A DNA stretch of 64,000 nucleotides from Phallusia mammillata (taxonomy: Eukaryota). Positions 11,401 through 64,000 of this stretch are shown here, one piece after another. Position numbers and translations under genes: made by a program. The stretch is taken from assembly GCA_965637545.1 (NCBI GenBank), contig OZ281494.1:31496001-31560000 (forward strand), written 5' to 3'. How positions within the stretch are numbered: the first letter of the stretch is position 1; each line of letters begins with the position of its first letter. The notes under the pieces were generated by a model. That model had not been told where the DNA came from, searched no databases, and was given only the letters and a program-made list of their open reading frames with translations.

Positions 11401-14400
11401 TGCTACACGTGTATGTGGAAACGCGAAGAGAATCAATGCGTTCTGATCAGGTAAGGGACCTCCTTATTTTTCTATTCGAATAAGGTTTCACTATTTTTTA
11501 ACTTATTTCACCTAACTGATAGGATCATCAGTGTCTTATTCAAATAGAACTGAAAATCTTTAAAAAAGCTGTGGATGACTTCAAAGTTTTTAGCCTGTAT
11601 TAAATTAACTATTAAGTTTGCTTGCTTTATGAAGGCAAATAGCTTTTTTTACAGAATTGCATTACAGCGAAAGTTGAAGGTTTAAATGTGCGGTGTTTCC
11701 AAATTTGCATTCTATTCCTAATTACCTTAAATGCCAGGCTGCCTGTTTATTAACATATCTCTGGGTTGTATGCAGGGTTATATATATTAAGGCCTGATAG
11801 AGTGGTATTATTGTTGTAGTAAGGTCGTATATTCAGTCATGGGAAAGTGTCAAGTAAAGGTCGCGCTTACTGAAATACTAGATGCCGGATGGCGTGTGCT
11901 ATTATAACGGCGTTGATGTAAATAACGCATTGTTTGAACAGTCATTGTTTGGATTCGAATACACACTCGTTTGAATAAAGCAATATAATGAATGATCGAA
12001 CGCAATGGTTCTCAACTGGTGACCTATATTCCGCAGGACGTTAACTATATTTGGCGATAAACTGGAAATATAATTAAAAATAGTTTATTGAATACTTAAT
12101 GCTAAAAAAACTTATCCAATTTGTTGACCATATATTGTTAGTTTTCAGTTATTTGATATCACTCCTCGAAATTCTGTATTGAAGGAATATATTTTAAGCC
12201 AATATGCTTGTTGAGGTTGCTGTCTTTATCGTTACTTTACAATGGACTGGTCCTCGATATTATGTTAATATTAGTGATGGTCTATGGCCTAAAACGAGTT
12301 GAGAACCACTGACCTGACGAAAATCCAAATATGCAATACATGGGCTAAAAGCCATTAGTGCCATGCACTTTGGGTCTCAAAATTTGTCAGTTTGCAAATA
12401 CCTTATTAAGAAGTTTTCTCTCTTTGGTTTTCTTTTTGCTGTAATTAATAGGGACGTTGTAACGTGCCGGGTAACGTTCTTTATTGGTTGTCATGACGAC
12501 AGGCCACGTTCTGGTTATTTACGTGACGTTGCGCGTTATTAAAACACGATCCTTGCCCGGTTTTGCTAATTTTATTACTTTGGAACATCATTCGGCAAAA
12601 TTCTCAAAAAATCGTGTTAATTTTAACTTGTCGTTCCAAGATTGAAAGCCAACTAAAAATACAACTTTTATAATGCGTTTGTTTGTGTCAATTCTGAGTG
12701 AATTGTTGTTTTCGTTAATTTTACTTCTTTCGAATATCGTTCAGCAAAATTCTCGAAAAAAACGTGGTAATGAAAGAACGTATTTTCAAATGCGTTTCCA
12801 AGATTAACTAAAAATGCAACTTTATAATGTGTGTGTATATGTCAACTTTGAGTAAGTTTGTGGTTTTTGCTCAGCTCGTTAAGTGAAATGTTATACCGCA
12901 GCTGGACGTTTAACAATTTCCCCTGTTTTGTTGGTTCACCTAACAAGATTAAGTTGTTATGGTTTAAAAAGATTGAACACTTTGGCGCTTTGCGATGATT
13001 GATTGAAAATTACCGTCACATTTACCTAACTTTACATACGATATGGAAATTATTTTATTGCTTTAAATGACATTGACTTCGCTAATTCTTCAAAATAAGT
13101 TTATAATGTCAAAATACTGGCTTAAAAAGTTGATGATAATAAGAAAATTAGGGTTCAAAACTGGTAAAATGAAAACTTGTGAACCCTAAAATTCTCTATT
13201 TTTCCAACACATAGCCCAATCAACTCGTGTTTTCAAAAGTGTCATTTTCGTGCGTCAAAACGTCTTAACGTTTCTGAACGAATTAACCCTTGCTCAGGTA
13301 TAATAATTGAGGTTGTCAAAATTAACAAAATGTTTACACGTTTTGAAATTTTAAACCACCTTGGGTATGCCAAGACTGTATTGGCTATTTGTAGGTATTT
13401 CAAATTATGGGATCAGGTTTGGAAACGTTATTTGTTCTAAACCTGTTAATTGGTTTAACACATGAACCGCAATGTTATTTTGTACACCGTAGAGAAATGT
13501 TTTAGCGCCCCAAAACCAAGCTAAATGGCGTTCGTTGGCAGTTTAAAAGATTAAGTTGTCAAGTTACAATTAATTTGTTTGACTAATTTCATTCAAAATT
13601 GTAACATGTTGACTCATGTTTGTTAAGACCACACTCTCGGGCTATTGGATACCAAAAACATGCGTAGAGAACCGATTAGCAGTGTATTTTAACGATTACT
13701 GTCACTCTCTGTCTTGTTAGCAATCGCAAATCCTCAACTTTTAAAAAAGTTGTCTTTTTCTCTAGAACGGATTATGTTTGACTGTGAGGTAATTTTTGCT
13801 GGCGCAGCAGAATTTTACTTCAACGAAAAAACGTCCGGGAAAAATTTTGCTGATAAAAAAAAAACTTCACCACCTAACTACACTTGACCCCTTAAATGTT
13901 GCTTATCATATATATTATACCATATGTTTATTTGCAGTTGCTCATATATTTACAAGTCATGCAAATGTAACTAATTTTGCAAACACTTTTGCGCATAGTG
14001 AAGCTACCAAGGAGGTCATCAAGTCATCTGTGTTCATAAATAGATTGCACAACTCAAAAAACCTAAACGAAAAAACAGCCACGCTATTGGAGTAATGAAA
14101 ATAAACATTTTTTTCTTCAACCTTTTTGAGCAACCTCATGTTTTGTTTTATCGAACGTTCCGTGATGTCACATCAGGAAACAATACCGTACTTAAGGCGT
14201 GACGTGATTCCTTACGTCAATTAGTTACCCGTCAAGCCCTCGGAATGTTTATGTTACGTTGCTGCGTATGTTGATAGTATTCTCGGGCATGTAGGTTGAT
14301 CAATTCGTAACAATGAAAGTTTTGGGTCACTACACGGACCTGCTCGTGAGTCTAATGAGGAAAAACGGCCCAAATAGAAACTGATGTGGCACCTCATATC

Positions 14401-17400
14401 ACTTCTGATGGCATTACCATTTGCCGAAACGTTTGATTAATAAAGCATGTCGCATTTTAAATCTATTTAGGCCGTTATTTTCCTTGGAATAAATTAATGG
14501 AATTAATAAAAGTTTTGTAACTTTGTCCAGGCAACGCGAAACAAACATCAAGCCAAATTTTGTTTGCAATTTTTCTTCATCAAATTATTATTGTTGAACG
14601 GTTTCGTAAAACAACCAAGACACCAAAAAATATGGGTTATCAATTCAAGTGTCTTGTTGTTTAAATGATGCTTGGAGTGTTCTGGGTATATTCTGCCGTA
14701 GGATCGCAACCGAACGCACAACCTAACAGGGTACAGCCGGTTGCATATTGTGCTTGAACCAGCAGGTTCTAGACGAGATAAAGTACGCCATACGAAGTCG
14801 ATTACTGGGTAAATCAGAATTGATTTTCTTCTACCTTTACAATTAAACGTGCACGTAGTAAGGCGATTCTTGGCTTCCCAACCCTAACCATCTGCCAGCA
14901 GAAGAAACATTTCGGTGAAATTTCGTTTTTCTTTGACTCGTGTCAGAAACTGCGTCAATACAGGGACTTTCCCGGCATGGCTATCCTTTTTTGCATATGT
15001 GCCAACGCGAAAGCAGGTCTTCTCTGGAAATCACGGCATTCTGGGCTATCGTGACCTTATTATGACCTTAGGTAATTGGTCGTTGAATTAGCATTTGTTG
15101 GACCTGCTATAAGGATTTTAATTGACGGAAAGGTTAATCTGTATGAAGGACATCATTAGGATATGCGTCCAACCTTTATTTTCAAGCTGTGTTATCAATC
15201 CTAAATTGTTCAAAACTTGCAAATAGTTTAAAATAAGAAATTAAAACAAATTTTCAGCTCTAAGAATTAACGTCTGAACCAGATTGAGAATTTGTTAAAA
15301 AAACAAGCAATTTTAATGCATGTTGGTTCGTTACACAAAATTTCTAATTCAAATATACATAAATTATGTAATAAATGGCAAAGATTTTAAAAGGAAACAG
15401 AAAAAAACGTTTTTGTAGTTTGCCACTCTTCAAATATTTTAAAATTACCTAAAAATCTAAATTCACGTTTTCAATTTTTTTTACATTCATAAATCCACAT
15501 ATAAGTACGCCTAATTAGGTCAAAGTGTCACTCAATAGAACCAACACTTAACCTGATCGGCAAACCCCAACGGCCTACAGTTAAACCCATTTACCCATTC
15601 CATATACAGAACTGCTGTGCATACAAAAATCCTGCATTAACCTTCTTAACCTTTTCCATCTGTTCAGTGGGGAGAGTGGAGCCGGAAAAACGGAGACGAC
15701 CAAATTCATGCTCAGTTACCTGTCTCACGTCAGCAAAGCTTCGGGTAAAACCGAGTAAGTGCCGTCTGCCACTCGTCTGTGACGTAATTATAACCGGCGT
15801 GACGTAATTAGGCTATGTGTGAATTAGTTTTTAGGAATGAAAATGATAGCAGTGTGCTTACTGTGTAGCTTTTTTTTCAACGTTTTTTGAACATTTAAGT
15901 GTTGAAATGTCCTTTAGGCTTCCTTAAGTTGTGTTATTAATTAATGCATTAGTTTTAGTGTTTAAATGTCCTTTAAGCTTCCTTAAGTCGTGTTATAAAT
16001 TGATGCACTGGTTTTACCAAGATAATTCTATTTAGTGTATCATCAATGTAAACCTTATATCTTTCCCAGACCATCAAAGGAAAATGGTCGTTCGATTGAG
16101 CAGTCGATTTTGGAGAGCAGTCCATTACTGGAAGCCCTTGGGAACGCAAAGACAGTGTACAACAATAATTCCAGTCGATTTGGCAAATTTATCCAACTTC
16201 TGTTTAGCGAGGCTGGTCAGATCAAAGGAGCTCGGATTACAGACTGTATCCTTCTAATTGTTATTGATATATTTTAATGTATAATGTACAGAGGGAATTT
16301 TCTTTTTGACTTGTTTCCATTTTGAGTGCCTTTGCTAAACATTACCATAATTTGTTGAAATTTTAGACTCAACAACATAAAGATAAATAGGATTTCTTTT
16401 TAAAATCCTAAAAATGGATTGATTTATTCGATTTGCTAAACTGACGAGAAATTACTATAGCATTTGACGTTTTATACTAAAAGCACCACTGTTTATTTCG
16501 TTTTCCTTTACTCGAAGGCTTTTACTTTCATCCACAAATCAGATCTACTAGAAAAGGTTAGTTTTGCTTTTCAATTTATTTCTTATTCATTTACGTTAAA
16601 TACGTGAAATTCAGTTTTTATTGAACTTTTAAATGCGCTTGAATTCAAATTATTGCATTCTGTTCTGGAGCTTCAATAGTTTCTATAGCTTTAAACTGTA
16701 TAGCAAAGAGCGTTTTTATTGACCATTTAAATGGACTTAAATTCAAATATGTTCATTCTTGTCTAAAGCTTGAATAGCGTATGCGAATAAATTTTCAACT
16801 GCACCGAGGCTAACCATGGAAATTGTTTTACAGCACAGAGTTGTTCGTCAGAATCCCGGTGAAAGAAACTACCATATTTTCTACCAGCTCGTTCGTGGAT
16901 TATCTCAAGACGAAAGAGGTAAGAAAAGTTGACACCCGAAAGTTCGCGGGTTCGAATCCCATCGACACAAGTTTTTTAACATACAAACCACTAACGGACT
17001 GACATTTTATGTTTATTCACTGTGTTGGACCTTTTCTTTCAGTTAATAAACAACCAAGTCTTTATACTGTATTTTGGTGTAACGTATTTGCCTTGTTCAG
17101 TGTCCAAAACGACACAAGCTTACCAATCCAGATAAACGTTGCAAGAGTTTTTTTCAGAAATAATACCATTTACAATTGCTGAATAACCAATAAATTATAC
17201 CACCAGTTTGGAAACGTGTATCTCCATGTTAAAATCTGTTAGCTTTTTTATATTAGAGAAATGTATTTCGCTATAAAAGCATAGTCAGTGTCTGTAAACT
17301 AACTAACCAATAAATTTGTTTGATTAATAATAATTGGACTGCATCCCCTCAGACCAAAACTTAAAAAAACTGATGTATTAGAATTATAATCAGACTTGCG

Positions 17401-20400
17401 AGGCAGACAGCCATACCATAATCAATTATTGTTTTTTTTTTACACAAAATTAATGCAAGAATTAGTTGTCTACAAACTTTGTTTACAGAAAAGCTCCATC
17501 TGCGTGAACCTTCCGAATATCATTATCTCAACCAATCAGGATGCGACTCTGATCCAACACTTGATGACGTCAAAGACTGGGAACAGTTTGAGGTATGTGA
17601 GCTACAATTTTATAAAGCGACCATGATAGGCAAAAGTTTGCCAGTCATAAGGGTTATAGGCTATAGGAATATTGTTGTTGATTTTTTTAATTTATAAACA
17701 TGTGCAGATGTGTAGCAAGAAAGTGAAAAATAGATTGGAAAATATATAAATTTGACTTTCAATTGTACAATGTTCAAGTCTATTTTATATTTTTGAGAAT
17801 TTGTCTCTAATTTTTACGTCTCGTGCGTAATAATGTATGTTTACCTGTAGTTTAATGTTAAAGCTTTAATTCATTGATGATAATGGCATAACTATCTTCT
17901 GAACATTTTTTAAAGAAATTGTGTCCTTATAAACCATTATTTAAACTAGAACGTGCTTTTATTCCAACAATTAATCAACATTAACCTAACAAATACTCAG
18001 AAATGAGCAAATCCTTTAAAATAAAATAACTGGTTGCCCGAAAACAGAAGAGCATCGTTTAGAAATTTGCCATTACTGGGTAAAACTTCTTCGAAAGTTT
18101 GGTTGCGTAGTGACCTTATTTGAACGATGCCATTTCGAATTCGTGTTCGGAAATAATGACGTCGGCGTTACTGTGCCAACTCCACAGGTCGTAAATGTTC
18201 GAGATGCCACTTTGTGACGTCACAATGATTGATAACCCTCGCTGGGGTGGGACGATTGATGAATTTTTTTAATTGCGTTGGTTTGACATTTTTGGACCAG
18301 GGAACGACTTTTTTCAATAACATACATTGGCTGGCCTAACTGTGCGCCTAAAATTTGCTTGAAAATAAAGAACTATACTAGTAAACTTCGGTTAATCCGG
18401 ACCCATTTGGACCAAAAATTTGTCCGGATTAGGCGAAAATCCTGGTTAACCGATGTCAAATAGTTTAAGCCTTACCACGTTACGAATCATTTGTACCTCA
18501 AGTTTTGTCCGAAATGGGCGAAGATCCGGATTAATCGAGATTTACTGTATACTGTTCTGAAACAAGACTGCATTGAATATATTGTGTTTGCGAACAAATC
18601 ACAAGAAAAAGGTGACGTAGTAAACCGATACCCAAGAAAAATGTCCAAAAATCGCACATAACGTTAAGAAGCAGCCAATTTGCCAACAATTACAAATTTA
18701 ACGGAATGACGTCAGGTTCATTTCTGGCTAAAAACTTAACCACGGTCGTTTGCCAACTGCTTGTATGCAAAACTACTAGCCAAGTGTTCGTACAACACTT
18801 CCAAGTAGGGTAATGTGAAACTTTTGTTTCATGCAGTTCCGTAATGGTAAAAAAACACGGTTGCTAATCCATAACAGTTACCCGACATTTTACCAAGAAC
18901 GCAAACTTTTTTCTGGGAAACAGAATTAGTCAATGAATTTACATGGAAAATAAACATTTCGCCTGACTAGCATCTTCAGTTTTTATTTAAATAGATTCTG
19001 TTCAGTTCAAACACTCACACAGTACTAATGGTTTATCATTCAAACTTCTTATGAGTTGTTGCTGCCAGGCATAATGACTAGATGAGTATTGGCTCTTCCA
19101 GCAGTACTATTATAAACAACCGACGTTTTGATGTCCCATACGGGACGCATTCATCAGGATAATGGCATATCTTGAAACACAATTATTCTTATAAAGCGAA
19201 AAAATCGGTGACACATAAACACACTTGTGCGTCTATAAACTAGCACCAACAGGGAAATAAAACTATGCCGTCCTTACTGAACTATGAATGGAACTGATCA
19301 TCGTGGTATGCCAGGCCCATCGAAGGCTTCATACCGAATCAGTCGGTACCAAAGCATTCCCACATGGCAAGGCCTAGGCTAGAAAAAAAAATCTAGCCTG
19401 TGGTGGGATTCGAACCTACGACAGGAGTCTTTTCGGGACTCACACTCTGCAACTAGTGAATAGAAGTGTGTCATTGTGTATTTCTGAAACTGTGTAATAT
19501 TGTTTTTGCAGCAATCCCTTGTGACTATTGGCTTTAAAGATGGCCAACGTGAGGATATGAAGAGCGTGTTGGCTGGAATATTGCAACTAGGAAATGTGGC
19601 TTTTGCAAATGCTGGTGGTGCCCAAGTGGTCGAAATGGACGGTAAGTTTCCTATCTTAATGCTTGACCTATATGGTTATCATCAAAAACCTAAACAAAGT
19701 TCACTTAAAAGGATGTGAAAAACCTCAACTTAATATTTTTTTGAAGATTTGACCTAAAATTACAACAATGTTACATCTCTATTCTTTTCATGTTGTGCGA
19801 AGATATAAAGTTACTGCAATCTTTTAACACTGTTGCTAAGATTAACTTCACAATATTTAGTTATAGACTGTCTTTAGGAATTTACTTTTTATGCTCTCCT
19901 TAAACTATTCTTTAGTTTTCTGAACGTTATTTTCAAATTTTTAACAATACCGTCTACTTTATTGTGCAATTGGGAATATTTTTCAACTTTCAAACATAAC
20001 AAATTTATTTTTCTTCCTATTTCTTTTTTTTTTCACTTTTATTTTCATTTATCAACTGAAAACCTTGTTTTCGCCTCCGGTATAGGAAAAGCGATTTTGC
20101 CTCCACGCAGTTTACCAGGTACTTTCCCTGTAGTAGTGATACCGTTGCCGTAGCACTCGTAGTGACGTCATTGCATGCATGGAATTAACTCCACCGCATA
20201 ATTTCTGAAGATTTGCGACTAATATTTTTGCCGCACTGGCCGTAGAGTGGCGTTTGCACTAAGTCCCATCACCGCAATTAATATCCACGGAAATTTAATC
20301 ATTTTGTGTGCCAATAGTTACGAGATTTTGTTTAAAATCTTGACTACAGTAGTACACCATAAGCGTAATTCTTGTTTATGGTGATTAAATTATGATCAGT

Positions 20401-23400
20401 TAGACATAAAAATAATTTGTAGGTAGTGTTTTTTCATGTGTTTTTAAGATGGAAAAATTAGATAGATTTTATCATTGTAGTCAGCGATTACCTTTTCATT
20501 TGTTTTAAAAAAGATATAAGAGATATGCAAGTCAATATATTTACTTTATTGTTACGTTTTGGCATTTACCAAAGCATTGGTTTACGTTGAACAACTTCTA
20601 GATTTGAAAAACAAATTCCAAACGTTGCAGTAAATTGTAAACAAAACATGCAGCCCATGAGCAAATTACAAATGTAAATTCTCCACAATGTCGTAAATTG
20701 AAAACAACATTTGCTTTATGCAAATTCCCTGGCAATTAAATTCCAATTAAACTACCATTCAAGACCATCATTTATCCAAATTAATTTGTGCCTAATTGGC
20801 TGCCAAACTACATGAATTGATTTGTAGTGATTTCACTAACACTGGCATTTACATCAGATACCAAGCTATTGCTCTATTAGTGCATGCTATTATTGTGTTG
20901 TGTATATATTTGTGTGATTAATTTCCGCACTGTTCAATTCGACTTGGCCACCTGCCACGTTGTAGCATGTGATGTGGAAGTACTTTTTCCTGTGTGGTTT
21001 CTGCTGTGTGGTGTATCACAATGCAGTTGGTGTTTTGTTCAAAATATGCCAATATGTCACTTGCGTTTTCTGAGCGGGTTCCGGGCACGCTTGATGCGGT
21101 AAACTGTAACAAACCTACATGGTAAATCACTTTGTTAACAAAATCGTGAAATTCGTTGTGTCTGACTGCACGAAGCTTAAGAACGTAGCTTTTTTGACAG
21201 CACATAGTGACATAAACTTGATTCATGTTTCTATAGTTTCTTCTTATTTATTGACGAATATAACGATTCAAATAGACGTAAAAAGCGTCATGCCTTATTA
21301 TGCAAACGTTTCGGCAAATGCTCATGCCATCATTAGTAATATGAGAGGCTACAATGGTTATATTTGTAACAAAATATAGTTAATGTCTTTTACTGTTAGC
21401 ACATCCAACCAAACACTCACTACGAAGTGCAAATAATAAAACAGCGTTTGTTACTTGAACATAAATTCATTAGGCTACTGGGTCAGCCCTGCAGCGTTCA
21501 TACAGACCAGCGATCACGGCATACACAGTCCCCCAAAAACTTGATTCAGTGCAACGCGTTTGATTAGCCTGGCGTACTATGATCAAAAATATTAATGGTA
21601 AGCTTGAAATGATGTTGACATAAATTGACTTTGCAATTTACAGTGGTGGACCAAACATCTCAGCTTCTCGGAATTGACAGTGAAAGACTTGAAGCTGTGA
21701 TGAAGGAGAAAACGATGAAGTTGCGGGGAGAAAATATCACATCGCCACAGAGTGTTGATCAGGTTAGGGGTGCAACGACTTACGGAAAATGTTTTTGCAC
21801 TGTATTTTAATGGAATATTTCACATTAATTTTAAGTAAAGCAGGTTATAACTGGTTGCATTGTAATTTGCTGAATACTAACGCAATATTTGCTGTTTAAG
21901 TAAAATAGATATTTTTTAAAGAGCTTATAATGAAAACAGTATGATAAATTAAAGATGATTTGCTCTACTTTTTATTTTTTTAGGTGGCTTTGAGCAAAAC
22001 TTAAAATTGAAAAAAAATGTTTTTTGTTATTGGAGCACCCTAAACTTTCACATTTGCGAAGTTAACAAACTATTTGCAGAGATTGCTCTTTAGAACCCCA
22101 ATCAACATTTTTAACTTTTCATAAAAGAACAATGAGTATGACTTCACATAAAAGTAAACCCTGGACGTCATTGAGCGAACGCAAATTAGTTTGAACGCTG
22201 CTGACTTAATGACTCAGCAAATTACGGAATTGCGTCACCGTGACTCGCCAATTGTTGAATAGTTCTCACGCACAGTAAACCATGGAACCTAAAAAAACAA
22301 AATTGAAAAAAGAAAACAGTCTTGTAATTAAAACCGTAAAATGAGCTAAGATACTTTGTTGCGCTGTCGATAAAGTGTGACTTTGATAAACGTTTACAAT
22401 TAAACCCAAACAACCAATTATTTTAACACCATATATCATACCCCTTTGGTGCTTCGTGCTTCTAGAAGGTACAGGGGGTAAATATATAAGTATTTTGATT
22501 TTCTTCGTAATGTTTTGGTGGAATTACCCCAAACGAGGTTAGGAACTGCTTAAATTTACGACTTACGGCAGTTTATACTCATTGTATGTTTTATTGCGTA
22601 TACCATATACGGTTCATATTTTTGCAGCGAAAAAAACCCAACAGCTTTTTTCTGTGTTTAAATGAACCTTGCCTAATTTAAAAGTCACACATTGGCGCGT
22701 TTAAACTTTACTGCTCTGTGATTGGCAGGCTTGCGACTCACGTGACTCCCTTTCCATGGCGCTATACTCTCAATTGTTTCGTTGGATTATCTCCAGAGTA
22801 AACCACAGAATCAAGGGGCCGGATGATTTTCATTTTATCGGCATCTTGGATATCTTCGGTTTCGAAAACTTTGCCGTAAGTATATGCACTTTATAACAAC
22901 TGTGCCTGTTAAATAATGTTCCGACTGGATGTAGATTGCGTGTATAAATGTCGTGTGCTTTAAAACATTTCAACATTAATGTAAAAACTTTAAGCCAATA
23001 AATTATTTGATGCAGACAGTGCACACTGTTTTGAACTATATTTCAGCCTTACCAAAAATGGTTGCTGTGTTTTAGGTGCAAGACTAACAACTTTAAAGTT
23101 ACCATTTTTTTTAGGTGAACCGATTTGAACAGTTCTGCATTAACTTTGCCAACGAGAAGCTTCAGGAGTTTTTCAACCGTCACATTTTCAGTTTGGAACA
23201 AATTGAATATAACAAGTCAGTTGCTACAATATATTAGAATTTAGAGTTACACTGAGGGGCACTAAAAAGTGTATTCTGCATCATATGGAACAAAAATCCA
23301 ACATCTAAATTATTTTTTATTTGAACGCCAATTACAGTTAAAATTATGGTGTAAAACCAGATTGTTTTTGTTAAAAAATCCAACAAAACTGTAATACAAC

Positions 23401-26400
23401 CGTTTTCAACGTCGATTTTGTTATTTTAAATGGCCGAATGGCACTAGAATCAGACTGACATAAACAACCGAAAATTGATCTTTTGCTATTTTGTTTTTGA
23501 CCAATAGATCAATACATTTTTAAGTTTAGACACATCGTTCTACTGTCATAAATATTAGTACAGTAAAACCCTAAGATGTGACATGTACAATAAAAATTCC
23601 AAGATGATTAAGCAAAGATTTTAATGAACTTAATTTCACAGGGAGGGCATAGACTGGTGCGACGTACAGTGGTCAGATAATAGTGAATGTCTGGATCTAG
23701 TTGAGAAGAACTTAGGATTAATTTCACTCATCAACGAAGAGAGCAGATTTCCCAAAGGAACGGATAAATCCCTGCTGCAGAAACTCCACAGCCAACATGC
23801 AGTAAGTAGAGTTGAAAACTGCTGAACTACAGTTTGGTATAAGCTTGGGTACAATATACACAGACTCGATAAGTAGTTTAATTAACAAATCAACTGCCAG
23901 AGTTGGTGATCTGCACTGATGATGGTTAGAGCGAATGATTAAACGTCTGCGCCTGGATGTTGGTTAACCTTGGTATTTGTTAAGTCCGCCCGACAAATAA
24001 TTATAGCCTTAGGATAAAAAAATGTAAATTTGTTGTCATCTTGTGTATACTAGACTTGACAAACACCAAACTGCAAAAAAATGCCGTAAATGCCATATTT
24101 TTGGCATACAATTTATGGTTGTTAAATTTCAATTAATAAATAAGCAATCTTATCTTATTTAGTATACCACTTCTAATGTTTCGTTTAATGTTAATGATAG
24201 AAACATTGAAAAGTTAAAACCAAAATTGCTTCTGCTGGATTTTGTAAGCTTTTATGGGTAATTGGCCTTTTTGGCCCTGAAAAAAAAAAATGTATATAGG
24301 TGCAGCACTGAAATACTGGCTATAAATTACACTAATATACTGCCTTACCAAGAATTTTTTATTGTCAAATAGTTTTTGGTTTTAAATGGTCACCACTTTT
24401 TATCTGCAAAGTAAACCATGACTCACAATCGGGTCATTGGGGCAACATTTAAGCCAAAGAAGTTTACCAGGAAATCAGTTTCGTTTTAGTGGTAACTTCT
24501 TGCCAAAAAATGAACTGGCAATCTGCAGTTTGTGTGACGTTCTAAACTTTTCCAAGATACAACGAAACTTGCTGACTGATATACCAAATATGCTGAGTGG
24601 TCTGCTTCCGTGTGTTGTTTTGTTGTGTGTGAAATTCACATCTTTTCAAACGTATATTTGCCTCAAAACCTTGTGTTATTTTTTTACTTGCTACCAAATA
24701 TCTACATTAGATTAAAAAACGTAATTTGTCAGAACCTGATATTTAAAACTGTGTGAAAAAAAGTATTTTTTCCTTGGTTAAATTTTGCGATCATTAGTTT
24801 GCGTTATGCGCAGTGGTGGGATTCAGCCGGTTCGCACCGGTTCTATAAAACCGTCTCACGAAATTTTATGATATCAGCGAACCGGTGAGCATTACTTTCA
24901 ATGGACTTTTTGTAACAGAATTGGCTGAAAACTATGACTTTTGTGATAGAACCGGCTGACAAAAAAAATTGAATTCCACCACTGATTATGTGGTAAAAAC
25001 TCCAAAACAACCTATAACCCTTGACCCTTTAGTATGGTGGTTTTTCGTCTTCAAAAAACAGTATGTTAGATTGTTATCTTCCACTACTCAATGCCCTTGT
25101 TTATTTTCCGCAGAAAAACGCGTTTTACGTGAAACCGCGTGTCACAGGAAACAAATTCGGCATCAAACATTACGCGGGAGAGGTAAGACTTGTTTTGTCA
25201 ACACAAATGTTCGTATTTGTGTACACACTGGTCGATATATACAAAGCACTACATCCAATAACTTACTGCTACTAATATAAGGCATCATGTACTTTTTGTC
25301 TTAATGCAAGTGGCACTGTTTACAACTTTTCAAACGGAAATTTCTTTTTTTCCAATGAAAAGTTTATATTTTTTAAACAAAACCTTAATGCATGTTTCTT
25401 GGCTTTGGTACATAAGACAAGGATTAAAAAAAAGATTAAGTGAGAATAAAATTGCCATTGAAGTTGCATATCGTGCTCATTTGTTGTAAAATGTTGGCTA
25501 TTTGCATAATTAGACGTTTGAATAGCATGTATTTAAGTCTATAGCTAAGTTCAGGGCGTAAAACTTCTTTTTTTTAAAGGTTCTTTACGACATCGACGGT
25601 TTTTTGGAGAAAAACAGAGATACATTTAGAGATGATCTTCTCGGGTTGTTAAAAGACTCAAGGTAACATTATCTACTGAGTTTTTAGCAACACACGACAC
25701 TGACTTGAAAAGTAACTTCATAAAAAAAAACTGCCAAAGACCTTGTATAGGTTGTACATTATATTGCGGACGTTTCAACAATGGCTGTGACAATACGGTT
25801 TCAAATTATTCGACACTCTGTACTGATAAGTACAATAGTGCCCGGTAAAAGGTCTACAACAGGATACATCATTCAATACATACAAGCTTTCTTACCCTTT
25901 GCACAAAAGGTTAAACTACAGCTTGAATACCGCCAAAAACACGTGTTCATTTTTTTAGCTGTGACCTCATATACGACATGTTCGAGAAAGTTCGGGGAAA
26001 TTCGGAAGACTCCGGAAAGGCTCGGAAAAAGCAGTCTGCCGTGACCGCAAGTGGACATTTCAAAGTAAGCATTTTTACACAACTTTTTGTCGATAGTTAA
26101 CAAGCATACAGAACAAAGTTTGAATCCTAACCCAACCACTTTTCCTTTGCAGAAATCGCTACATGCTCTGATGGAACGATTGTCGTCAGCAAGTCCGTTC
26201 TTTGTGCGATGCGTAAAACCGAATTTGGAAAAGGTAACGACAAAAATTTTGTTGTACTCTGAATGTAGATCAGGCCGGGCTATTTGGGTCAGGTTTGGGA
26301 ATAAAATAAAACTGGCTTGATTCGGGCCTGGCTTGCACTTCAAAAACTAAAATTATCAACTATGACGTCACAAAAGCATGACGTCACGCAACATTTGTAG

Positions 26401-54700: not shown

Positions 54701-57700
54701 CCAAATTTCAGCCAATTCTGACACTGTTTAAAAACCTCACCCATTTTAGGGGGCTAGCGGGGTAAATACTGGGGTTATCAACAAAAACAAAGTGGGATGC
54801 ACATCTACATGAATATATCTACCATCTGTGTAAATTTCAGCCACATCCATCAAACATTTGATGGCAAAACGAGTCGGACAAACTTTGGGGAAAAAATACT
54901 CATTTTAAGGGGCTAGCGGGGTAAATACTGGGGTTATCAACAAAAACAAAGTGGGATGCACATCTACATAACTATATCTACCATCTGTGTAAATTTCACC
55001 CAAATCCATCAAACATTTGATGGAAAAACGAGTCGGACAAACTTTGGGACGAAAATAACCAATTTTAGGGGGCTAGCGGGGTAAATACTGGGGTTATCAA
55101 CAAAAACAAAGTGGGATGCACATCTACATAACTATATCTACCATCTGTGTAAATTTCAGCCAAATCCATCAAACATTTGATGGAAAAACGAGTCGGACAA
55201 ACTTTGGGGAAAAGAAAAAAAACAAAAAAACAAAAACAATTTGAGTAAAATCAATATAATTACTGCTATAAATCTTTAAATCTGCAGTTCTTTAAGATAA
55301 TTAGACGTAGTTTGAATAGTATTGCACGTTAATAAACGTTTTAACACCATCAATTTTAAAACGAGCAAACAAACTCTTAAGCCTTTACCTGGTCAGCTAA
55401 TGACGTCACAACCGGAACAAGTGTTTCCGGTTCACTGCACATCCCCGCCTCGTCAATGATACAATGCGAGAATAGCATTCGCTTCAGTTTGGGATATTTT
55501 GACTTGAGTTTTCGTTTAAAGATCTTCACTGCAAACAAAAAAACTTGAATCAAACAAAAAGCCTTACTCTTCTGTTGACTGGATTACTAATGTTTTTTTA
55601 AACCCCTTGATTCGTAGCAATCTTTTCAATTTTGTATATTATGTATGAATTATCTGTGCATGTAGAGTAAGTGCGGGTGTATATGTTATATTCGTGTGTA
55701 AATTACAGTGGGGATTAAGATTCAGCATTGGAAATTTAGCCTAATCCGCTTTAGATCCACATAAATACATACATATTATTTCTATTATTCAAGTTATGTT
55801 TTACGGCGTGAAATCAACCAACTATTACAATCATAGTGGCAAATTAGTACGTTATTCTTTTGAACATTCTTAAACCGACTTACAGAGCATTTTAAGTTTA
55901 AGTAATTCAATCAGCTTTGACGACGACGTGGGCTAGTATTTTTGCTGCAAAAACCAATTTCCTACATTATAGCTTTAAATATAAAATTGGATCGGAGCAA
56001 TTGTTTTTATAGAATGGCTGGATTTTAATGAAGCAAGCATACTTGCGGAGCCTGTGCAGGTACAAATAATGACGTCATGTCGAGATAGTTCCTCCTCTTT
56101 TGCTGCTTGTACCGTAGCTTTGTATTCAAGGTACTCGCGGAGAGTTACTGGTGGTGTTTTGTCCTTAAACCTGAACAGACGATATCGGAAATTTTAAGCT
56201 TAAACTTATGTAGCTCATGCTTTAATTTTCCAAATCAAATAAACAAGGCGTACATCGGTTATTGAAATACTGCCTCATGTAATGCGTTTCCAAGCAAAAT
56301 TGTTGTGTTGTATATTGCATTGCAAGTCTCATACGAATTCAGACGTTCTTGTGTTTAGTGTGTGGTAAGCGCCTTGAAAACCATTTTTGTTGTCGGCTAT
56401 AGTTGTAATTTTTCCACGATTCTTATTAACTGTGTGAATGTTTCTATTAACTTTGAATCTTCCTATTGTCTGTGTAAATTCAGACGTCCTTGAATTTAAT
56501 GTGTGGTAAGGGCCTTGAAAACCAACTTTGTTTTCGGCCATAGTTACAAAACACAACGTACTTTTTGTCGTAGTCCCTGAGTTTCCTATGCTTGCTGTTT
56601 GTCTCATTTCTGATAATCTTATGAAGAGTTATCGATTCAAGTTTTCCTGATGGGTTCGGTTCGTTTTCTTTTTTAATTGAAGGATTGAGTGGATTGGGAT
56701 AATCCTGTTCTTCCATCAACTTTCCGTAAACTCTTAGTATTTTCATTCCAGTTTTCATCAAATATTCTAAACGTAAAATGACGCAAATGTTTTTTTTTTG
56801 TATTACGCAGGAATATTTGTAATGATGGGTTGGGTTTTAAGTAATATCATATTGTTGCCAGCAGATTAATGTTCTCAAAGGTTCGAATGCCCAAAGGTAT
56901 TTCACAAGGACTTGAAAAAAGCAAACAAACTATGCCAACAAAAAATCCCCAACAGCAACAAGGGTGTCTAAATTCTATGTCTCGTTTTATCACATAAGGC
57001 ACAACACAGCAGCCTACAACACAATTATCACCGAGTTCTCTCTTTTGCCCCAGGATATGGAATCGAGGACGTTTTTTTTTAAAAAAAAACGAGGCCGGAG
57101 TATTTTTGGCGACTCTCACTCTTAGCCAGTTTTGTTAAAAGACATTTATTAATTGTGCAAACGGCAACATAAAGGATTGTTTTTTTGGAGTCGGGATTTA
57201 TCAAAAAGTGGAGTTTTTAGGAAAAAGTGAAACTTACCAATAACAGATGTCATTTACAACTTATTGTACCTGCAACAACATCCACCGATTTATTAGAAGG
57301 TCCACAATAGAGAATAAATCCCTCATTGCCGGTTGCGATGTTCATCTGACGGAAGTAATGAACCATGTAAGCACCCATAAACGATTTCCCTGTGCCTGTG
57401 AAACATAAATAACGGCTGGAATGAATAATAAAGTTAAATCGATAAAACACAGCGGACTCTTTTAAACACATTAGCAACAGTTGTGACAAATGTGTTTGTT
57501 TAACCATAGTACGTCAGGCTTTTGAAGGTTCTATACCAAATTATCCGGTCACCGTTTGTTTCAACATATGACAAGCACAGGTTAGAAAGATTTAGCTGTT
57601 GGTGTGATTCGAATAAACGACACGAGCCTATTCGGGACCTCGCTCTGCCAATTGAGCTACACATGCTCAGTGGTTAAACCGTCTAAAGTCGAATCACAAG

Positions 57701-60700
57701 CACCGTTGCCTGTCCAACACGTCCGTTCGTTTAGTAGTAGGTGATTGCTAATTCGACTATTTATTTAATGTCCCTTTTTGTGACTTGAAAGGTGTGTGTT
57801 CACGACGTTTATCATGACCAACTGTGTTACGTCCTGCAAAGAAAAACTGGGACCAGAGTTAGGAATGTTTTGGGGTTAAATGATTTCACTTACCCGGTGG
57901 CCCTTGTACGAGTGTCAGTTTATTTCCCATGGCTCGTTGAACCTGTCCTTTTTGTTCGTTGTTTAACGGAAATTTGAACCCCCTGACCTCTTCGCTGCCA
58001 ACAGATTGTATAATACGTTCAACATCAGGGTTGTATTTGAGCTCATTGATTCGTGCTATATCTCCAGTACACAGCATTTCGGCAATTTCAGTGTTTTCTT
58101 TTGGACTCGATCCTTTTCTAATGCTTTGTAGCGACTTGGCCATTCGCCTACAGTAAAAGACCAAATTTATTTTGTACAAAAGGTGGGCGACCCTTGCCCT
58201 GATGAGAGACGCCCCCAAATGAGACGCCGAAACTTCAAATGATTTGTGTATATTTGCCGGTTTAGCAACAAGCAAAGTTTACTAAATCATTATATTGGAA
58301 AAAGTTTCATTTCATAAGTATCCACAACTTATCAATTTTCAATACTCCATTGTGGTCATTCACACACAGAGAATGCCATTGCGGTCATTCACATATTTTA
58401 CACACTTAGCTAGATTGAAAAAAAAACGATAACTTAGGATTCCCCAAGTAAATAAACGTACAATTGGCACGGAATGAACTACAGGAAATCACTTTGCGCT
58501 GATGTATTTTCCGTTTTATTTATTTATTTATTTACTTAACATATTTACCTGTGTGGCACATGCAGGGGTATGTATTCCACAGTAGCCAGTGTTTCACTTT
58601 TGTAGATGGGGTCAGTGCTCTCCACTTTGGACAGAATCGACCTGCACAGTATGAAACTGACTGTGGTCAAGTTGGTAACATTTTCCCTATCTTCTTCCAC
58701 CGCAACAATTAGAGCATGTGCCACCCAAGTGTACCGTGATTCTGCAACACAAGTTTAATAAGATGTGAAAAGGAGGGCAAGTTGCAAAATATACTGTTTG
58801 AATATATTTTGGACCGACAACCTATATTAAACTGTCATGGTCCAACAAACTATTGTGAAATAATATGGGTAATATTTCATGAAACACATTAATGGCCTCT
58901 GTGCTAATTTTAATACGTGTCAGAAACACATTTTAAACAACCGAAAATTTCAATTTACATGGCAAAATGGTCATTAAAACTTTACAAAAAAGAAACTTTA
59001 CCGTTGTCATTTGATAGAACATTTTTGACACGAATGCACAAAAAGCCATCTCTGTGCATGTGAATCATCCTTTCCTTGCAATACATAGTTTTCAGGGTGA
59101 AGTATCCAGCTTCTGTAAAGATAAAACATAATTTTTTTGAGGTCATACCTTGGACTTGGTATACAAATCAAAAGTGCTCTTAAATGGCCTTAAGAATAAC
59201 AATTATTAATCCATCAAAGCAACATTTCCAATTGCATTTGAAGTTCAAAAATGACTTCCTCGTGTGCACAGTGCAAGTTGTTTTTGTAACAAGTTGAAAG
59301 TAAAATATCCAACTGATACGTATAGAAGGTTTTGAAACCCGTCCAAAATCCAACTGTTTCATACACAGTGGTGATTGGTCACGTTACTGACAATAACAAA
59401 ACCTCATATTTATTATAGATTAATTACACTGACCTCCAGGCCTGGTCCAATGTATGTTAACTCCATTGAACGTGATCGAAAAGCCGTCAACCACAGCGCA
59501 ATAAACTCCATCCAGTCGCAGAACAGGTAGCCATACGTTGGCATATTGCTTCATTGTCATTGTCTCGTTTTTTCCCTGGACTAAACACAACCAGGTCATC
59601 GTATAAAAGTAAAATTAGAACAACCAATCAGTATCACTTTACCTCGCAAAATCGTCTATAAGTTTTTGATAAATATTGGGACAAATCTATTGTCAGACGC
59701 AAATATTTTTGTTAAAACTGGCCACTGTTTTATTCTATGTACTGTACTAATATTTCTAGTATTATCATCATTACTGAACTAAGAAAAGTAGACAATTTGG
59801 AAACAAACAGCTGAATTACACCACAACATTTTGTATCATTTAATGTAGCAAATTGTAAAAAAAACATGTAAATTTGGATTTAGTTCTGAAAGTCTAATTT
59901 TTTAAACTTAACATGGACTTCTAAAGTAACTTTATAGCAACAATTGCTGTAACATGTGGCATAACATGCTTTTTTATGTTAAAGCGGCTGATGTTTTTGA
60001 TCAATCCACTGGGCTAAAACTATAAAGCTGGCTCTCCAACACGCTGTTATTAAAAAACATGCGTCCTATGTAATGATTAACCATATAACACCGTTTGCCA
60101 AACTTGCGACGGATATACATTGGATACCTAATTTCAAAGAAATAATAACATACTATTGAGTGGTAAGGAGCCTACCGACTTACCGCGTGTTGGCCGAACG
60201 TCGGATGCAAAGGTTTCAACTGCATCAGTTTGATGGCTCAGACACAAATCGAAGTCATCAGCCAAACACAGAAGCTGTACTGTGGGTTCTAACATTCCTC
60301 TCCTAATTCTGGGATTCAATTGAACTAAAATCGGCAAACCAGACTCTACAAACGTGGAAATCACGCGCACGTGGCGTATATCATTCTTGGTCCTATAAGA
60401 CATGTGGTCATCGCATTTGCTGTCCTTGTGATCACATTTTCGCCCATCACACGGACCCAGCTGGTTAGATGCTTTTGCTGGACACCGTTGAGTTGGTTTT
60501 TGCTTTGCAACGATTCTGTCGATTTAAAACATTGTTTTACACTTACGAAAAATGGATACTTCATCTTTTGGGGGAGATTGTCATATTCGGTAAGAACGTT
60601 TTAAGCGACATCATGAAAGCTAATAAATGATTATAAAACGTCATCACGCTACGTCATCATACTAAAATACATAAAAGATGATAAATAATGTTGACAGGAC

Positions 60701-63430
60701 CTTAGACGTGGTCAAGTTCTCAAATCAAAAGATTGAAAAAAATACTACATTACACCACTATAACGGCGTTATAAACGGAACTCTACGGAAGTTTCAAACG
60801 TTTCAAACACAAGTTTCATGCAAGTGTTACATTTGGTCACCTCTTTAAATGTGCCTTGATCTCATTTGATGTTGTTTCGCCCATAACAGTCCCGGATGTG
60901 ATTACAGTGGACAAATATCCTACAAAATCCTTCACCCTTTGCGCGGGAACCGTTGAGTGTTGGAAATGACTGTGCTTGAACCCTTTTCCTTCGCTCTTAT
61001 CTCGTAGGTCGTAATATCTGTCGACGTGTGAAAGTTAATTTTTAAGTCTGCTGAAGTTACTGACGTGTTGGTTTTAAATTCCTTATTTAAACGACCGTAT
61101 TCAACAATTGACTGTTGAGGTGCGTGGTTTTACAGTCTAAGAACGTTTTTTAGGCTACAACATTGCAAGCCGCAAATAGCCTCGTGTTATGGGGTCGAAT
61201 CGATGCTTAATATAGATCAGTTTTTAGCCGACACCTTGTCTTTTGAAAGTGCCCGGAAGACCCAATCAATTCAGTATACTGCTTCTAGTAGGCCAGCCCT
61301 ATTGTGATTTATATATCAGTGTTCCGTTATCCCAGTTATAATGATGCTCTTCCATATATGTTTGTGAGGGATAATGACACTTCGTTGTTATTGATCAACG
61401 TTCATTTACCAAATAATTGTAATTGCGGTCATGCACCTGATATACCAGAACAGGTGGTTACTCTTCAGAATTTTTTCACCAGGGCGGCAAAACTTGGTGT
61501 TCACTTGTTCTCCCCAAATTGCTTTCCTGGCAAAGAGGTGGGTGTAGGGAAGAATTGATATCCTGCGCAGATTCGAATAACTGACCAAACTGAATTTAAT
61601 CTCCTTGTTTGTGATCTTCAAGAAAAAAACAAGTTTTTAATATTTTGTTCTTGTTCTTTACTTAGTTCGAGGATCCACCAATAAACGTTCTGGTACCATT
61701 CAGTTTATATTCTAAGTTATACCGGTATTTTTCGTAGCAAAAAAGGGCTTAGCTAAATTTGAATCCATAGTAAACAAGTAACATAGGAAGAATACGAATT
61801 TACACAAATATTGATTGTCTCACCCACCTCTGTCACAACAGCCTGCTGGTAACTTCTCTCTTGTTGATCCTGAAATAGCTTGGCCAGTGTAAACTGCATT
61901 AGTTCCCTCTCGTAATCTTTAGCGTCGTTTTGACGCAGAGACAGTTGCTTGCATGTTCTAAAACGAATTCATTAAAAATGCTTTCGCAGCCTTCCTAAAA
62001 TCTTTTTGAAGCAAAGCCCAGGCAAGAAAAAAGGTGATTATCCCTTTGAAATATTTACGTTCAAACAGATTGAAATTGCCAGAGATTATAAGCACTAAGC
62101 ATTAAATATTTTTCATTACATAGGTTCGAGCGTTCTAACTTTGCCGAATATGTTAACTTTAAAGCAGCCGCTTTAGGCCTGGTTTTGGAGAACCTATGTT
62201 CGTATTCTATACAGCCAAAAATGTAAACATGGCTTGCTCATATCATCTGAGATATAATAGCATGATGAAACGTTATGTGCCTTCATTTCTTTAAAACAGT
62301 ACAATTTAATTCGACCTACTCGTTTAAGCCTTTTTCTTGAGACATTTCTTCCAGTACAATAACATCATCCCGTCTGGCGGGCTGATTGGATTTCTTACAG
62401 ATTTTGATGATCTGGCGTTGTGCTATGATGTCTGTGTAACGCCGAATTGGAGAGGAGCACCAGGAGTAAAACGGGAGGCGGAGTGAGAAGTGGGAGTGAG
62501 AGGAGGGGAGGTTTTCATCAACACGGGAGGCTTCTTTAAGTGTTGCTCGCTTTTGTATCCCGATTAACCTGGTCAATGTTAGGTTGAAAGTTTTAGTCTT
62601 TTAATTGACTTTGAAAAAGATACTAGGCCTATCACTTAGTTGAAAAACATATGTATGTAAATTGATTTATGTAACATCCTTAGTAAAGGGTGCATGACTT
62701 TAGTTTAGACTTATCAAAGTTTACTTTTTTATGTTCATATACAGATTTTTGCACACTTATTAACATTAATTTTAAAAAAACATTGCATAACTGGACATGT
62801 TTTTCTGAACTTTAGTTTCTTGAGCTTACCCGTCATTGGCGGGGCAAATAGAAGGTTGTAGTCCATCACACGAGAAAAGCATCAGAGCTAGATCAAGATC
62901 TCCTTCTTGCAAAGCTTCTTTGATGCAAACTAATAGTTCGGGTAAAACGTGCAAGTCCTGTGCGGATAAAAGTATTGTGATATTCCACACATAATGAGGG
63001 TGCTTACCGGTTTCAGTCAGCACTGAGCCGAACAGACACTCAGTCTTGATATTCGAGTAAGTGTAAAAAAATCAAATAGAAAATAGTATTTCGTAAAAAC
63101 AGTCTTACAACCATCAAATGCTTAGTTTTATGTGTTATGGCTCTTTCGTCGTTTCAATTAATAGATGCGTCCCATCAAAGTTTGATAACCACTTAGCTAA
63201 TTTAACATGGCCACGGACAAAAATACCCAAAATCGTGCTTTTCTGTAATCAAAAAGCAATGGACGTACGTGTCTCGGTGTTGGCAAGTCCTCTGGAAGTT
63301 GTTGGTTGAGATAATTGACCCTTGACTTGAGTGAGAGCGATAGTTGGATTTGCGAGTCGTAGCGGAACATCCAGTCTCTCCATTCCTCCTCTAAGGGTGG
63401 ATCCTGGCACCGTAGGAGGAAATTGCACCT
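51607..63430 (-). CDS. HELZ2: HELZ2-like RNB exoribonuclease / UPF1-like SF1 helicase, 3' part (20 exons, about 1157 aa; 5' end outside the window)
   Basis: Frame-consistent exons encode the RNB end motif HFSL...YSWCSSPIRRYTD, then QGPPGTGKS, CGPSNKSVD, DEAG, GDQKQLQP, LQYRM, SQGSERD and LGFVTDPHQINVAITR. RNB followed by a C-terminal SF1 helicase is the HELZ2 architecture. Confidence 0.9.
52140..52307 (-). CDS. HELZ2: HELZ2-like exon (motifs V-VI)
   Basis: SERDYVILSTVR...LGFVTDPHQINVAITRSRRGLCII. Confidence 0.94.
52504..52666 (-). CDS. HELZ2: HELZ2-like exon
   Basis: DIMVLSPYKAQ...TVVTSQG. Confidence 0.93.
53099..53326 (-). CDS. HELZ2: HELZ2-like exon
   Basis: ICDFPSSHFYNSAL...NSKYN. Confidence 0.92.
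53679..53813 (-). CDS. HELZ2: HELZ2-like exon (motif III)
   Basis: VVLIGDQKQLQPV...SMFERL...LTLQYRM. Confidence 0.94.
54020..55209. repeat. Tandem array: three near-identical 160-bp units (54741, 54901, 55061) after several diverged ~125-bp units
   Basis: Unit CATTTTAGGGGGCTAGCGGGGTAAATACTGGGGTTATCAAC...AAATTTCAGCCAAATCC... Confidence 0.88.
55389..55528 (-). CDS. HELZ2: HELZ2-like exon (Walker B)
   Basis: CIIDEAGMCSEPETLVP. Confidence 0.94.
56043..56170 (-). CDS. HELZ2: HELZ2-like exon
   Basis: ELSRHDVIICTCTGSA. Confidence 0.92.
56335..56545. repeat. Tandem duplication, period about 140 bp
   Basis: AATTCAGACGT...GTGTGGTAAG.GCCTTGAAAACCA...TCGGC.ATAGTT occurs twice. Confidence 0.8.
56562..56766 (-). 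CDS. HELZ2: HELZ2-like exon
   Basis: KILRVYG...SITLHKIIR. Confidence 0.92.
57270..57395 (-). CDS. HELZ2: HELZ2-like exon (Walker A, motif Ia)
   Basis: TGKS...ILYCGPSNKSVDVVA. Confidence 0.94.
57503..57673 (-). mobile_element. tRNA-derived SINE
   Basis: Minus strand TGTAGCTCAATTGGCAGAGC...TTCGAATCAC; same body. Confidence 0.72.
57894..58147 (-). CDS. HELZ2: HELZ2-like exon (motif Q, start of Walker A)
   Basis: LNNEQ...TLVQGPPG. Confidence 0.93.
58549..58741 (-). CDS. HELZ2: HELZ2-like exon
   Basis: YTWVAHA...TVEYIP. Confidence 0.88.
59002..59112 (-). CDS. HELZ2: HELZ2-like exon
   Basis: GYFTL...FLCIRV. Confidence 0.87.
59434..59580 (-). CDS. HELZ2: HELZ2-like exon
   Basis: QYANVWLPVLRLDGVYCAV. 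Confidence 0.87.
60184..60515 (-). CDS. HELZ2: HELZ2-like exon
   Basis: ILVQL...LEPTVQL...DFDLCLSH. Confidence 0.85.
60841..61017 (-). CDS. HELZ2: HELZ2-like exon
   Basis: YYDLRDKSE...KAHLKR; phases fit, weak donor. Confidence 0.75.
61437..61615 (-). CDS. HELZ2: HELZ2-like exon
   Basis: ITNKEIKF...LPYTHL...LFWYIR; phases fit. Confidence 0.75.
61828..61957 (-). CDS. HELZ2: HELZ2-like exon
   Basis: QNDAKDYERELMQFTLA; phases fit neighbours. Confidence 0.85.
62320..62568 (-). CDS. HELZ2: HELZ2-like exon (RNB SPIRRY motif)
   Basis: HSHFSLRLPFYSWCSSPIRRYTDIIAQRQI. Confidence 0.93.
62830..62957 (-). CDS. HELZ2: HELZ2-like exon (RNB)
   Basis: DLHVLPELL...DGLQPSICPA. Confidence 0.87.
63269..63430 (-). 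CDS. HELZ2: HELZ2-like exon (RNB)
   Basis: RCNFLLRCQDPP...LSLSLK. Confidence 0.85.
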
Positions 63431-63763
63431 CTGTGTAAAGAGAAATCGTAAGGAACGATACATATCAACAATTTGAATGCACTTCGTGACCGACGTTTCG
63501 ATGTGCCATGTTTCAAATGCTGACAGCTTGAGTTAATCGCATACCGGTTTATATCAACACACTCCGTTTTATTGCATACTAAATCATATACGTTCTGTAC
63601 AGCAGTGTTTTCAACCTCTTCCGTCACGGGGACCCCTTGAAAATTTCGGCAAAATTCTGTAAACCACTTGTAGAATATTGGTTTGAAAATATTAGGTTAA
63701 TCCCACAAAAAAGGTTGTCTATATTTAGGATTCCGATTCACAACACAAACTACAAGAGCTTTC

Positions 63764-63811
63764 ATTGCTCTGAAGAAGCCCTTCTGTTTTGGTGGGCGAA
63801 ACGTCAGCAAT
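63764..63811 (+). ncRNA. Minimal type I hammerhead ribozyme (Penelope-like element type), intact core
   Basis: ATTGCT-CTGAAGA-A-GCCC-12 nt loop-GGGC-GAAA-C-GTC-AGCAAT: 6-bp stem I, 4-bp stem II, palindromic ACGT stem III, GUC cleavage triplet. Confidence 0.85.
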
Positions 63812-64000
63812 TTAATGTTCTTAAAAAAACAACTTTATTCTGTTTAGAATCACACCAGTTGAGCGACAAACTTTGTCAAACAAACAACAAAAGCAACAAT
63901 ACAAGCTACAAAACTTATTTAACGTGCTTTGTATACGCAAAAATGTAACTTAAAAAAATTGTCGTTTTTCAAACAAAAAAGAACGAGAAAAAGTAATACC

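Follow-up and report, generated by a model that had tools for sequence, protein, structure and literature searches.

What is a complete hammerhead ribozyme motif doing inside an intron of a protein-coding gene, and on the strand opposite to that gene? The motif lies near the downstream edge of the window (the whole 64-kb stretch of DNA analysed here), and it may be viewed as a chance match, as a ribozyme in use by the host, or as the remnant of a mobile element. On the evidence set out below, we consider it highly probable that it is a genuine minimal hammerhead (min-HHR) in a 121-bp 3′ remnant of a Penelope-like element (PLE), placed antisense in an intron of a HELZ2-like gene, decaying neutrally and most likely inactive.

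Direct reading of the letters 63600–64000 revealed a complete minimal type-I hammerhead at 63764–63811 on the plus strand, the parts of which are listed in Table 1 together with the related features of the window. Every nucleotide of the core (C3 U4 G5 A6 N7 G8 A9, G12 A13 A14 A15.1, and U16.1 H17) is present, the conserved G10.1–C11.1 pair is formed by G63778 and C63797, and helix I has 6 bp in this copy. The scissile bond is predicted at 63805/63806, on the 3′ side of C17. The preliminary description of this DNA had placed all the catalytic nucleotides here, and each part was indeed read at those plus-strand positions. The unpaired A at 63777 is a detail additional to that description; it is a known trait of the min-HHRs of PLEs and no defect (PMC4209133). 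In the MFE fold of the monomer, the hammerhead secondary structure was obtained, with helices I and II around an open core (−14.1 kcal/mol). Because the ACGU palindrome stands without a helix III loop, a dimeric active form is implied. When two copies were submitted to RNAcofold, the MFE dimer was a trivial swapped duplex, 1 kcal/mol better than two monomers; this program represents nested structures only, and since the kissing ACGU helix is not among them, the result is uninformative on dimer activity.

Table 1. Positions of the hammerhead parts, the fragment that carries them, the host intron and exon, and other hammerhead relics in the window
Feature	Position	Strand	Remarks
Helix I, 5′ strand, ATTGCT	63764–63769	+	pairs with 63806–63811 in the MFE fold
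Core box C3–A9, CTGAAGA (CUGAAGA)	63770–63776	+	direct reading
Unpaired A between A9 and G10.1	63777	+	direct reading
Helix II, proximal 4 bp, GCCC (63778–63781) / GGGC (63794–63797)	63778–63797	+	reading, MFE fold
Distal helix II region and loop 2, 12 nt	63782–63793	+	distal pairs weakened in the window copy
GAAA = G12 A13 A14 A15.1	63798–63801	+	direct reading
Palindromic ACGT (ACGU), minimal helix III	63801–63804	+	direct reading
CGTC = C15.2 G16.2 U16.1 C17	63802–63805	+	C17 = 63805
Helix I, 3′ strand, AGCAAT (AGCAAU)	63806–63811	+	reading, MFE fold
5′-truncated 3′-terminal PLE fragment, 121 bp	63761–63881	+	approximately unit positions 2556–2673 of 2677 bp
Host intron, 569 nt, GT..AG on the minus strand	63431–63999	−	spliced RNA contigs; fragment antisense inside
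Host exon downstream of the intron	63268–63430	−	spliced contigs
min-HHR relic	14394–14441	+	24.6 bits; CUGANGA box disrupted
min-HHR relic	19114–19165	−	35.9 bits; core broken, G12 to A
min-HHR relic	21297–21344	−	26.6 bits; core broken, G5 to A
min-HHR relic	23908–23955	+	16.9 bits; core broken, G12 to T

To place the motif among its relatives, the window's own genome (240 Mb) was searched. A relaxed min-HHR pattern gave 2,117 exact matches there, as compared with 33 for a reversed-pattern control; the ACGU palindrome is common to the 2,117 matches, and three or more consensus families can be distinguished among them. In the family of the window copy alone, 244 pattern matches were counted, against 0 for the control. 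Among the first 100 matches listed for this family, the proximal helix II reads GCCC/GGGC in 67 (hand count) and GTCC/GGAC in 30, while the wobble intermediate GTCC/GGGC occurs once and the mismatched GCCC/GGAC twice. The difference between GCCC/GGGC and GTCC/GGAC is a compensatory switch at pair 10.2–11.2, which separates subfamilies and was probably a single event inherited by one of them.

The helices were also examined in an alignment (A3) of 30 motifs from three families, chosen by the core pattern and not by the helices. One feature of this alignment is that 77.3% of the cells of the 10-pair structure are paired, as compared with 31–55% when the 3′ partners are slid, and that the covariation score reaches 0.506, the slid controls not exceeding 0.213. 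Another is that both-sided changes are found in 7 of the 10 pairs: helix II is 92.5% paired, with both-sided changes in 3 of its 4 pairs, and helix I covaries between the families. The G10.1–C11.1 position is G-C in 24 motifs, G-U in 4 and unpaired in 2, and the unpaired column carries A or T in 30/30 motifs, across all three families. The columns of the C3–A9 box save N7, and those of GAAACGT, are invariant by construction, because the selection pattern fixes the CUGANGA box and GAAACGT. The A3 counts overstate the independent events, since the sequences within families are related; the helix changes between families are real despite this kinship. A covariance model built from the 30 motifs (R1) also detected four min-HHR relics of other PLE families in the window (Table 1), all of them more than 39 kb from the motif.

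The sequence around the hammerhead is repeated in the genome. A search with 63700–63920 yielded, from 492 candidates, at least 42 scored matches, namely the window itself and 41 others, and the scored copies match 63761–63888 at 81–86% identity. When the copies were aligned with their flanks, one common 3′ end about 75 nt past the hammerhead and many different 5′ break points were found, which is the pattern expected from target-primed reverse transcription; the homology of the window copy ends 2–3 nt upstream of helix I. In longer copies, the upstream part is coding sequence in which a GIY-YIG motif is plainly recognizable, and two members of the family, L063 and L074 (not the window copy), have a single ORF in which Pfam RVT_1 is followed by a C-terminal GIY-YIG. 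When the full L074 unit was compared with the window by blastn, only 63761–63876 matched (83%), at positions 2566–2683 of the queried L074 stretch (approximately 2556–2673 of the unit), and no similarity to PLE coding sequence was found within the window or 1.4 kb beyond. These results agree with the preliminary description in several respects: it had proposed a PLE hammerhead with a palindromic minimal stem III, had seen no RT ORF nearby, and had suggested a search for the family size and for a link to a GIY-YIG RT, both of which are now given. Its choice between a solo pseudo-LTR and a non-autonomous element stands in part. The window copy is a solo remnant, but a 3′ end of 121 bp is shorter than the 381-bp pseudo-LTR of the family, so that it is not a solo pseudo-LTR.

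Similar short stretches flank the fragment, at 63745–63760 upstream (ACAAACTACAAGAGCT) and at 63896–63907 downstream (ACAATACAAGCT). They might represent an imperfect target-site duplication, in which case the insertion would reach approximately 63895 and include an A-rich end.

The parent family is a canonical endonuclease-bearing (EN+) Penelope-like element. In L074, a 2677-bp unit with an 840-aa open frame carries the DKG, YVDD and GIY-YIG/CCHH endonuclease motifs; in front of it stands a pseudo-LTR, which repeats 381 bp of the 3′ end of the unit with one base different. The L074 hammerhead begins 133 nt past the stop codon, with about 77 nt left between C17 and the end of the unit; in the full elements, the hammerhead is also present in the upstream pseudo-LTR. 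Head-to-head inverted truncated copies (including L013) occur in the family, and a 38–40-nt "tail" corresponding to unit positions 1–38/40 follows many of the 3′ ends (L016 and L096). A pseudo-LTR arising by partial tandem arrangement, adjacent inverted 5′-truncated copies, and a tail of 30–40 bp are the hallmarks by which PLEs are recognized (Craig et al. 2021, PMC8557442). At the protein level, a search of the genome gave members of the same family with 845-aa open frames as well as many more distant PLE families, amounting to 1,008 candidates altogether. No CX2-5CxxC linker is visible upstream of the GIY-YIG in the L074 translation, and its absence suggests Penelope/Poseidon rather than Neptune/Nematis.

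Several further observations were made on the members of this family. The open 840/845-aa frames with RT and GIY-YIG are found at L074:4169–7226 (G000:C1:1488168–1491225), and similar open-frame loci at G000:C1:1679804–1681072 and C1:1698920–1700188. The single base by which the L074 pseudo-LTR differs from the 3′ copy is a G8-to-A change in the upstream hammerhead, and the near identity of the two copies suggests recent activity of the family. The 5′ end of the unit (L074:4550–4590), whose first 40 nt or so contain the first ATG of the frame, recurs as the "tail" at L016:1952–1991, L016:3067–3104 and L096:2106–2145. This 5′ end carries CTGGTGGACGAAACGCC, which resembles the 3′ half of a hammerhead (the 3′ strand of helix II plus GAAAC); a matching CUGANGA half was not found upstream of it. 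Possibly, the stretch is left over from a 5′ hammerhead of the kind present in the Anolis Poseidon element. Elsewhere, at G000:C2:14009876–14014895, PLE units are arranged in tandem with a period of 2021 bp; there are at least three of them, 75–76% identical to the query ORF, and because each unit has several in-frame stops, they are read as an old array of degraded PLE.

The window copy is the most diverged of the 49 unique copies sampled, with approximately 81% identity to the family majority as compared with 88–98% for the others. Its core and proximal helices are unchanged from the majority, whereas three substitutions, one of them CCG to CTG, are found in loop 2 and the distal helix II; one distal pair is lost (A to T) and another is now a G-U wobble. 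The earlier term "intact" is thus appropriate for the core and the proximal helices and not for the eroded distal helix II. The sixth pair of helix I is private to the window copy, the majority having AGCAAA. Relative to the majority, a hand count gave changes at 4 of 51 nt around the hammerhead and at about 14 of 70 nt in the remaining fragment, a difference that is not significant; it could reflect local constraint and is equally well explained by selection before insertion. No second core-intact hammerhead was found by the pattern or the covariance model in the 64-kb window and 1.4 kb beyond. Since a second copy is needed for helix III and none is intact nearby, the window min-HHR is devoid of a partner in cis. 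A weak covariance-model match at 58191–58244 was dropped as a dimer partner, as it has neither a complementary helix II nor the ACGU palindrome.

The gene around the motif was delineated with contigs, probably of RNA, that come from four sequencing runs on the same organism (X1–X4). The contigs lie on the exons 62320–62566, 62828–62956 and 63268–63431, which are joined across introns with CT..AC ends, corresponding to GT..AG on the minus strand. One contig passes from 63431 to the letters that follow window base 64000 (L001); the splice position is ambiguous by one base, and the CT..AC rule settles the intron as 63431–63999. When the exons were scanned one at a time, RNB (PF00773) was found at 62316–62576, with a weak second match at 63919–64224 (E = 0.003), and AAA_11 at 57250–57507, in a downstream exon. 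These domains fit an RNB plus SF1-helicase, HELZ2-like gene. With exons on the minus strand to either side of the motif and a HELZ2-like combination of RNB and AAA_11, the position assigned in the earlier work, intronic and antisense to HELZ2, was corroborated. The contigs of X1–X4 cover the flanking exons and leave the intron without coverage; X1–X4 are a few small runs, with which a rare antisense RNA would be compatible.

From these data, the following history may be proposed. The min-HHR would have come with the 3′ untranslated end of an endonuclease-bearing Penelope-like retrotransposon of the canonical type. The 5′ truncation most likely occurred at insertion, when target-primed reverse transcription would have stopped early, although a later deletion would look identical. 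In an active element, two hammerheads on one tandem or read-through transcript could come together through their ACGU palindromes in a 4-bp helix III common to both, and the dimer so formed could cleave after C17, as the mechanism is described in the literature. The intact core of the window copy probably reflects selection in the ancestral active lineage followed by chance survival, the fragment now presumably decaying neutrally in the HELZ2-like intron. Having no partner and no detected transcript, the solo copy is most likely inactive.

Other explanations need to be weighed against this history, and the simplest is that a short degenerate motif was matched by chance. This may be suspected because no hammerhead was reported by Rfam: cmscan with the models of five hammerhead families (Hammerhead_1, _3, _II, HH9 and HH10) gave no hammerhead match in the whole window at the gathering score, nor at E ≤ 10 on 601 bases and on 76 bases, so that a match to a curated Rfam hammerhead covariance model was not obtained. 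In addition, the folding-energy z-score is an ordinary −1.17. The Rfam miss is probably due to the models expecting a helix III hairpin, which is absent here, and we regard this null result as a limitation of the models and not as evidence against the motif. On the other hand, the pattern CTGANGA-N(8-38)-GAAACGTC matched once in the window and in 0/100 dinucleotide-preserving shuffles, the motif is situated inside a repeat linked to RT plus GIY-YIG ORFs, the genome contains a 64-fold excess over the reversed-pattern control, and the helices covary between families. By the shuffles, the repeat membership, the genome excess and the covariation, a chance motif is ruled out, its probability being practically nil. 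Quite different is the supposition that the ribozyme has been exapted and functions in the intron, either cleaving an antisense transcript or regulating the HELZ2-like gene. The core and both proximal helices have survived in spite of a divergence of about 19% in the fragment, and the hammerhead part is less changed than the rest, as this supposition would lead one to expect. Nevertheless, the motif is antisense to the host, so that the host pre-mRNA holds only its complement; the intron has no RNA contig, the partner hammerhead for the required dimer is absent, and the distal helix II is degraded. Moreover, thousands of equivalent intact relics exist, and one survivor among them requires no selection. 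We thus regard exaptation as highly improbable.

A source other than a truncated autonomous PLE should also be considered, namely a short non-autonomous, retrozyme-like derivative of the family. Such a form of about 509 bp exists in the genome (L095:1475–2171, L096:1410–2145 and L097:1238–1952, in G000:C1 near 5.639, 8.359 and 20.995 Mb), in which unit positions 1–140 are joined to unit positions 2476–2677 through some 165 nt of other sequence; in its 3′ end, this form is of one sequence family with the window fragment. A partial 3′ copy stands before it, so that two hammerheads in direct orientation are found 509–514 nt apart, and the whole has the appearance of a retrozyme-like non-autonomous PLE belonging to the GTCC/GGAC subfamily. 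Since the start of the window fragment, at unit position 2556 or so, lies within the region common to both forms, the two sources are indistinguishable by sequence there. The window copy is, however, single and not tandem, and it has GCCC/GGGC, whereas the derivatives sampled (C1:5639546/5640055, 8358981/8359490 and 20995322/20995836) have GTCC/GGAC; a derivative as its source is accordingly given a small probability. As for activity, a solo relic might be activated in trans by the hammerhead RNA of another, expressed PLE copy. This is conceivable because the identical ACGU palindrome is found in all of the min-HHRs, which number over 2,100 and come from three PLE families or more. Were it so, each dispersed intronic relic would, at times of PLE expression, serve as a conditional site of cleavage in antisense or read-through transcripts; we deem it a very remote prospect.

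Minimal type-I hammerheads in the terminal repeats of PLEs were described by Cervera & de la Peña (2014; PMC4209133). According to that study, they form large consensus families in each genome with compensatory changes, and are characterized by a conserved unpaired nucleotide, the G10.1–C11.1 pair, a palindromic 15.2–16.2, the absence of a helix III loop and a longer helix II. They are mostly solo, which was ascribed to truncated PLEs, with pairs on opposite strands also occurring nearby; a dedicated descriptor was required to find them, and the monomer was not cleaved while the dimer and trimer were weakly cleaved (PMC4209133). The present case has the same type-I topology, CUGANGA/GAAA core, unpaired A, G10.1–C11.1 pair and ACGU, the same extended helix II (4 + 3 bp in the family majority), the same placement within the terminal repeats of elements encoding RT plus GIY-YIG, and the same thousands of mostly solo copies per genome with opposite-strand pairs. 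Nothing essential differs, the window copy being a decayed solo fragment of 121 bp. Judged from its letters, the window motif has all the traits that define the PLE min-HHRs, and the element is a further instance of a class described since 2014 and present in thousands per genome. Annotation based on Rfam will miss this whole class.

A second comparison is with the Poseidon element PAc of Anolis carolinensis, whose hammerhead cleavage needed the protein of the element, was dispensable for insertion in vitro, and left no ends detected in RNA-seq (PMC11167929). Both are PLEs with a pseudo-LTR and a hammerhead, both show a genomic "tail", which in PAc was ascribed to internal initiation of reverse transcription, and both have the first ATG of the unit at the junction of the repeat and the ORF. 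They differ in that the complete hammerhead of PAc overlaps the start codon, whereas here it is located in the 3′ UTR, with about 77 nt between it and the unit end, and the first ATG is overlapped by nothing more than a stretch resembling half a hammerhead. The animal non-LTR retrozymes (PMC7229834; bioRxiv 10.64898/2026.07.22.740005) likewise carry type-I hammerheads on short non-coding repeats related to PLEs, and the tandem derivative of about 509 bp in this genome comes from the same family as the window copy; the window copy itself is single and truncated and forms no tandem unit. With the amniote intronic hammerheads (Rfam Hammerhead_HH9 and HH10), it shares a position within an intron of a protein-coding gene. 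However, HH9 and HH10 are sense, monomeric and conserved across species with a stable helix III, while the window copy is antisense, has no helix III hairpin and no Rfam match, and is a transposon relic.

The locus is thus an ordinary transposon relic with no sign of host use. The genome is rich in PLEs: over 2,000 of its min-HHRs have an intact core and belong to several families with covarying helices, and it offers open 840/845-aa frames, near-identical pseudo-LTRs and a short, internally deleted derivative with paired hammerheads. This set may be useful for two questions: the role of the hammerhead in PLEs, and the descent of the animal retrozymes from them. Finally, apart from the hammerheads, a tRNA-like match was found at 36307–36378 on the minus strand (Rfam RF00005; 34.8 bits, just over the gathering score); several pairs of its acceptor stem are non-standard, and it is possibly a tRNA-derived repeat or pseudogene.
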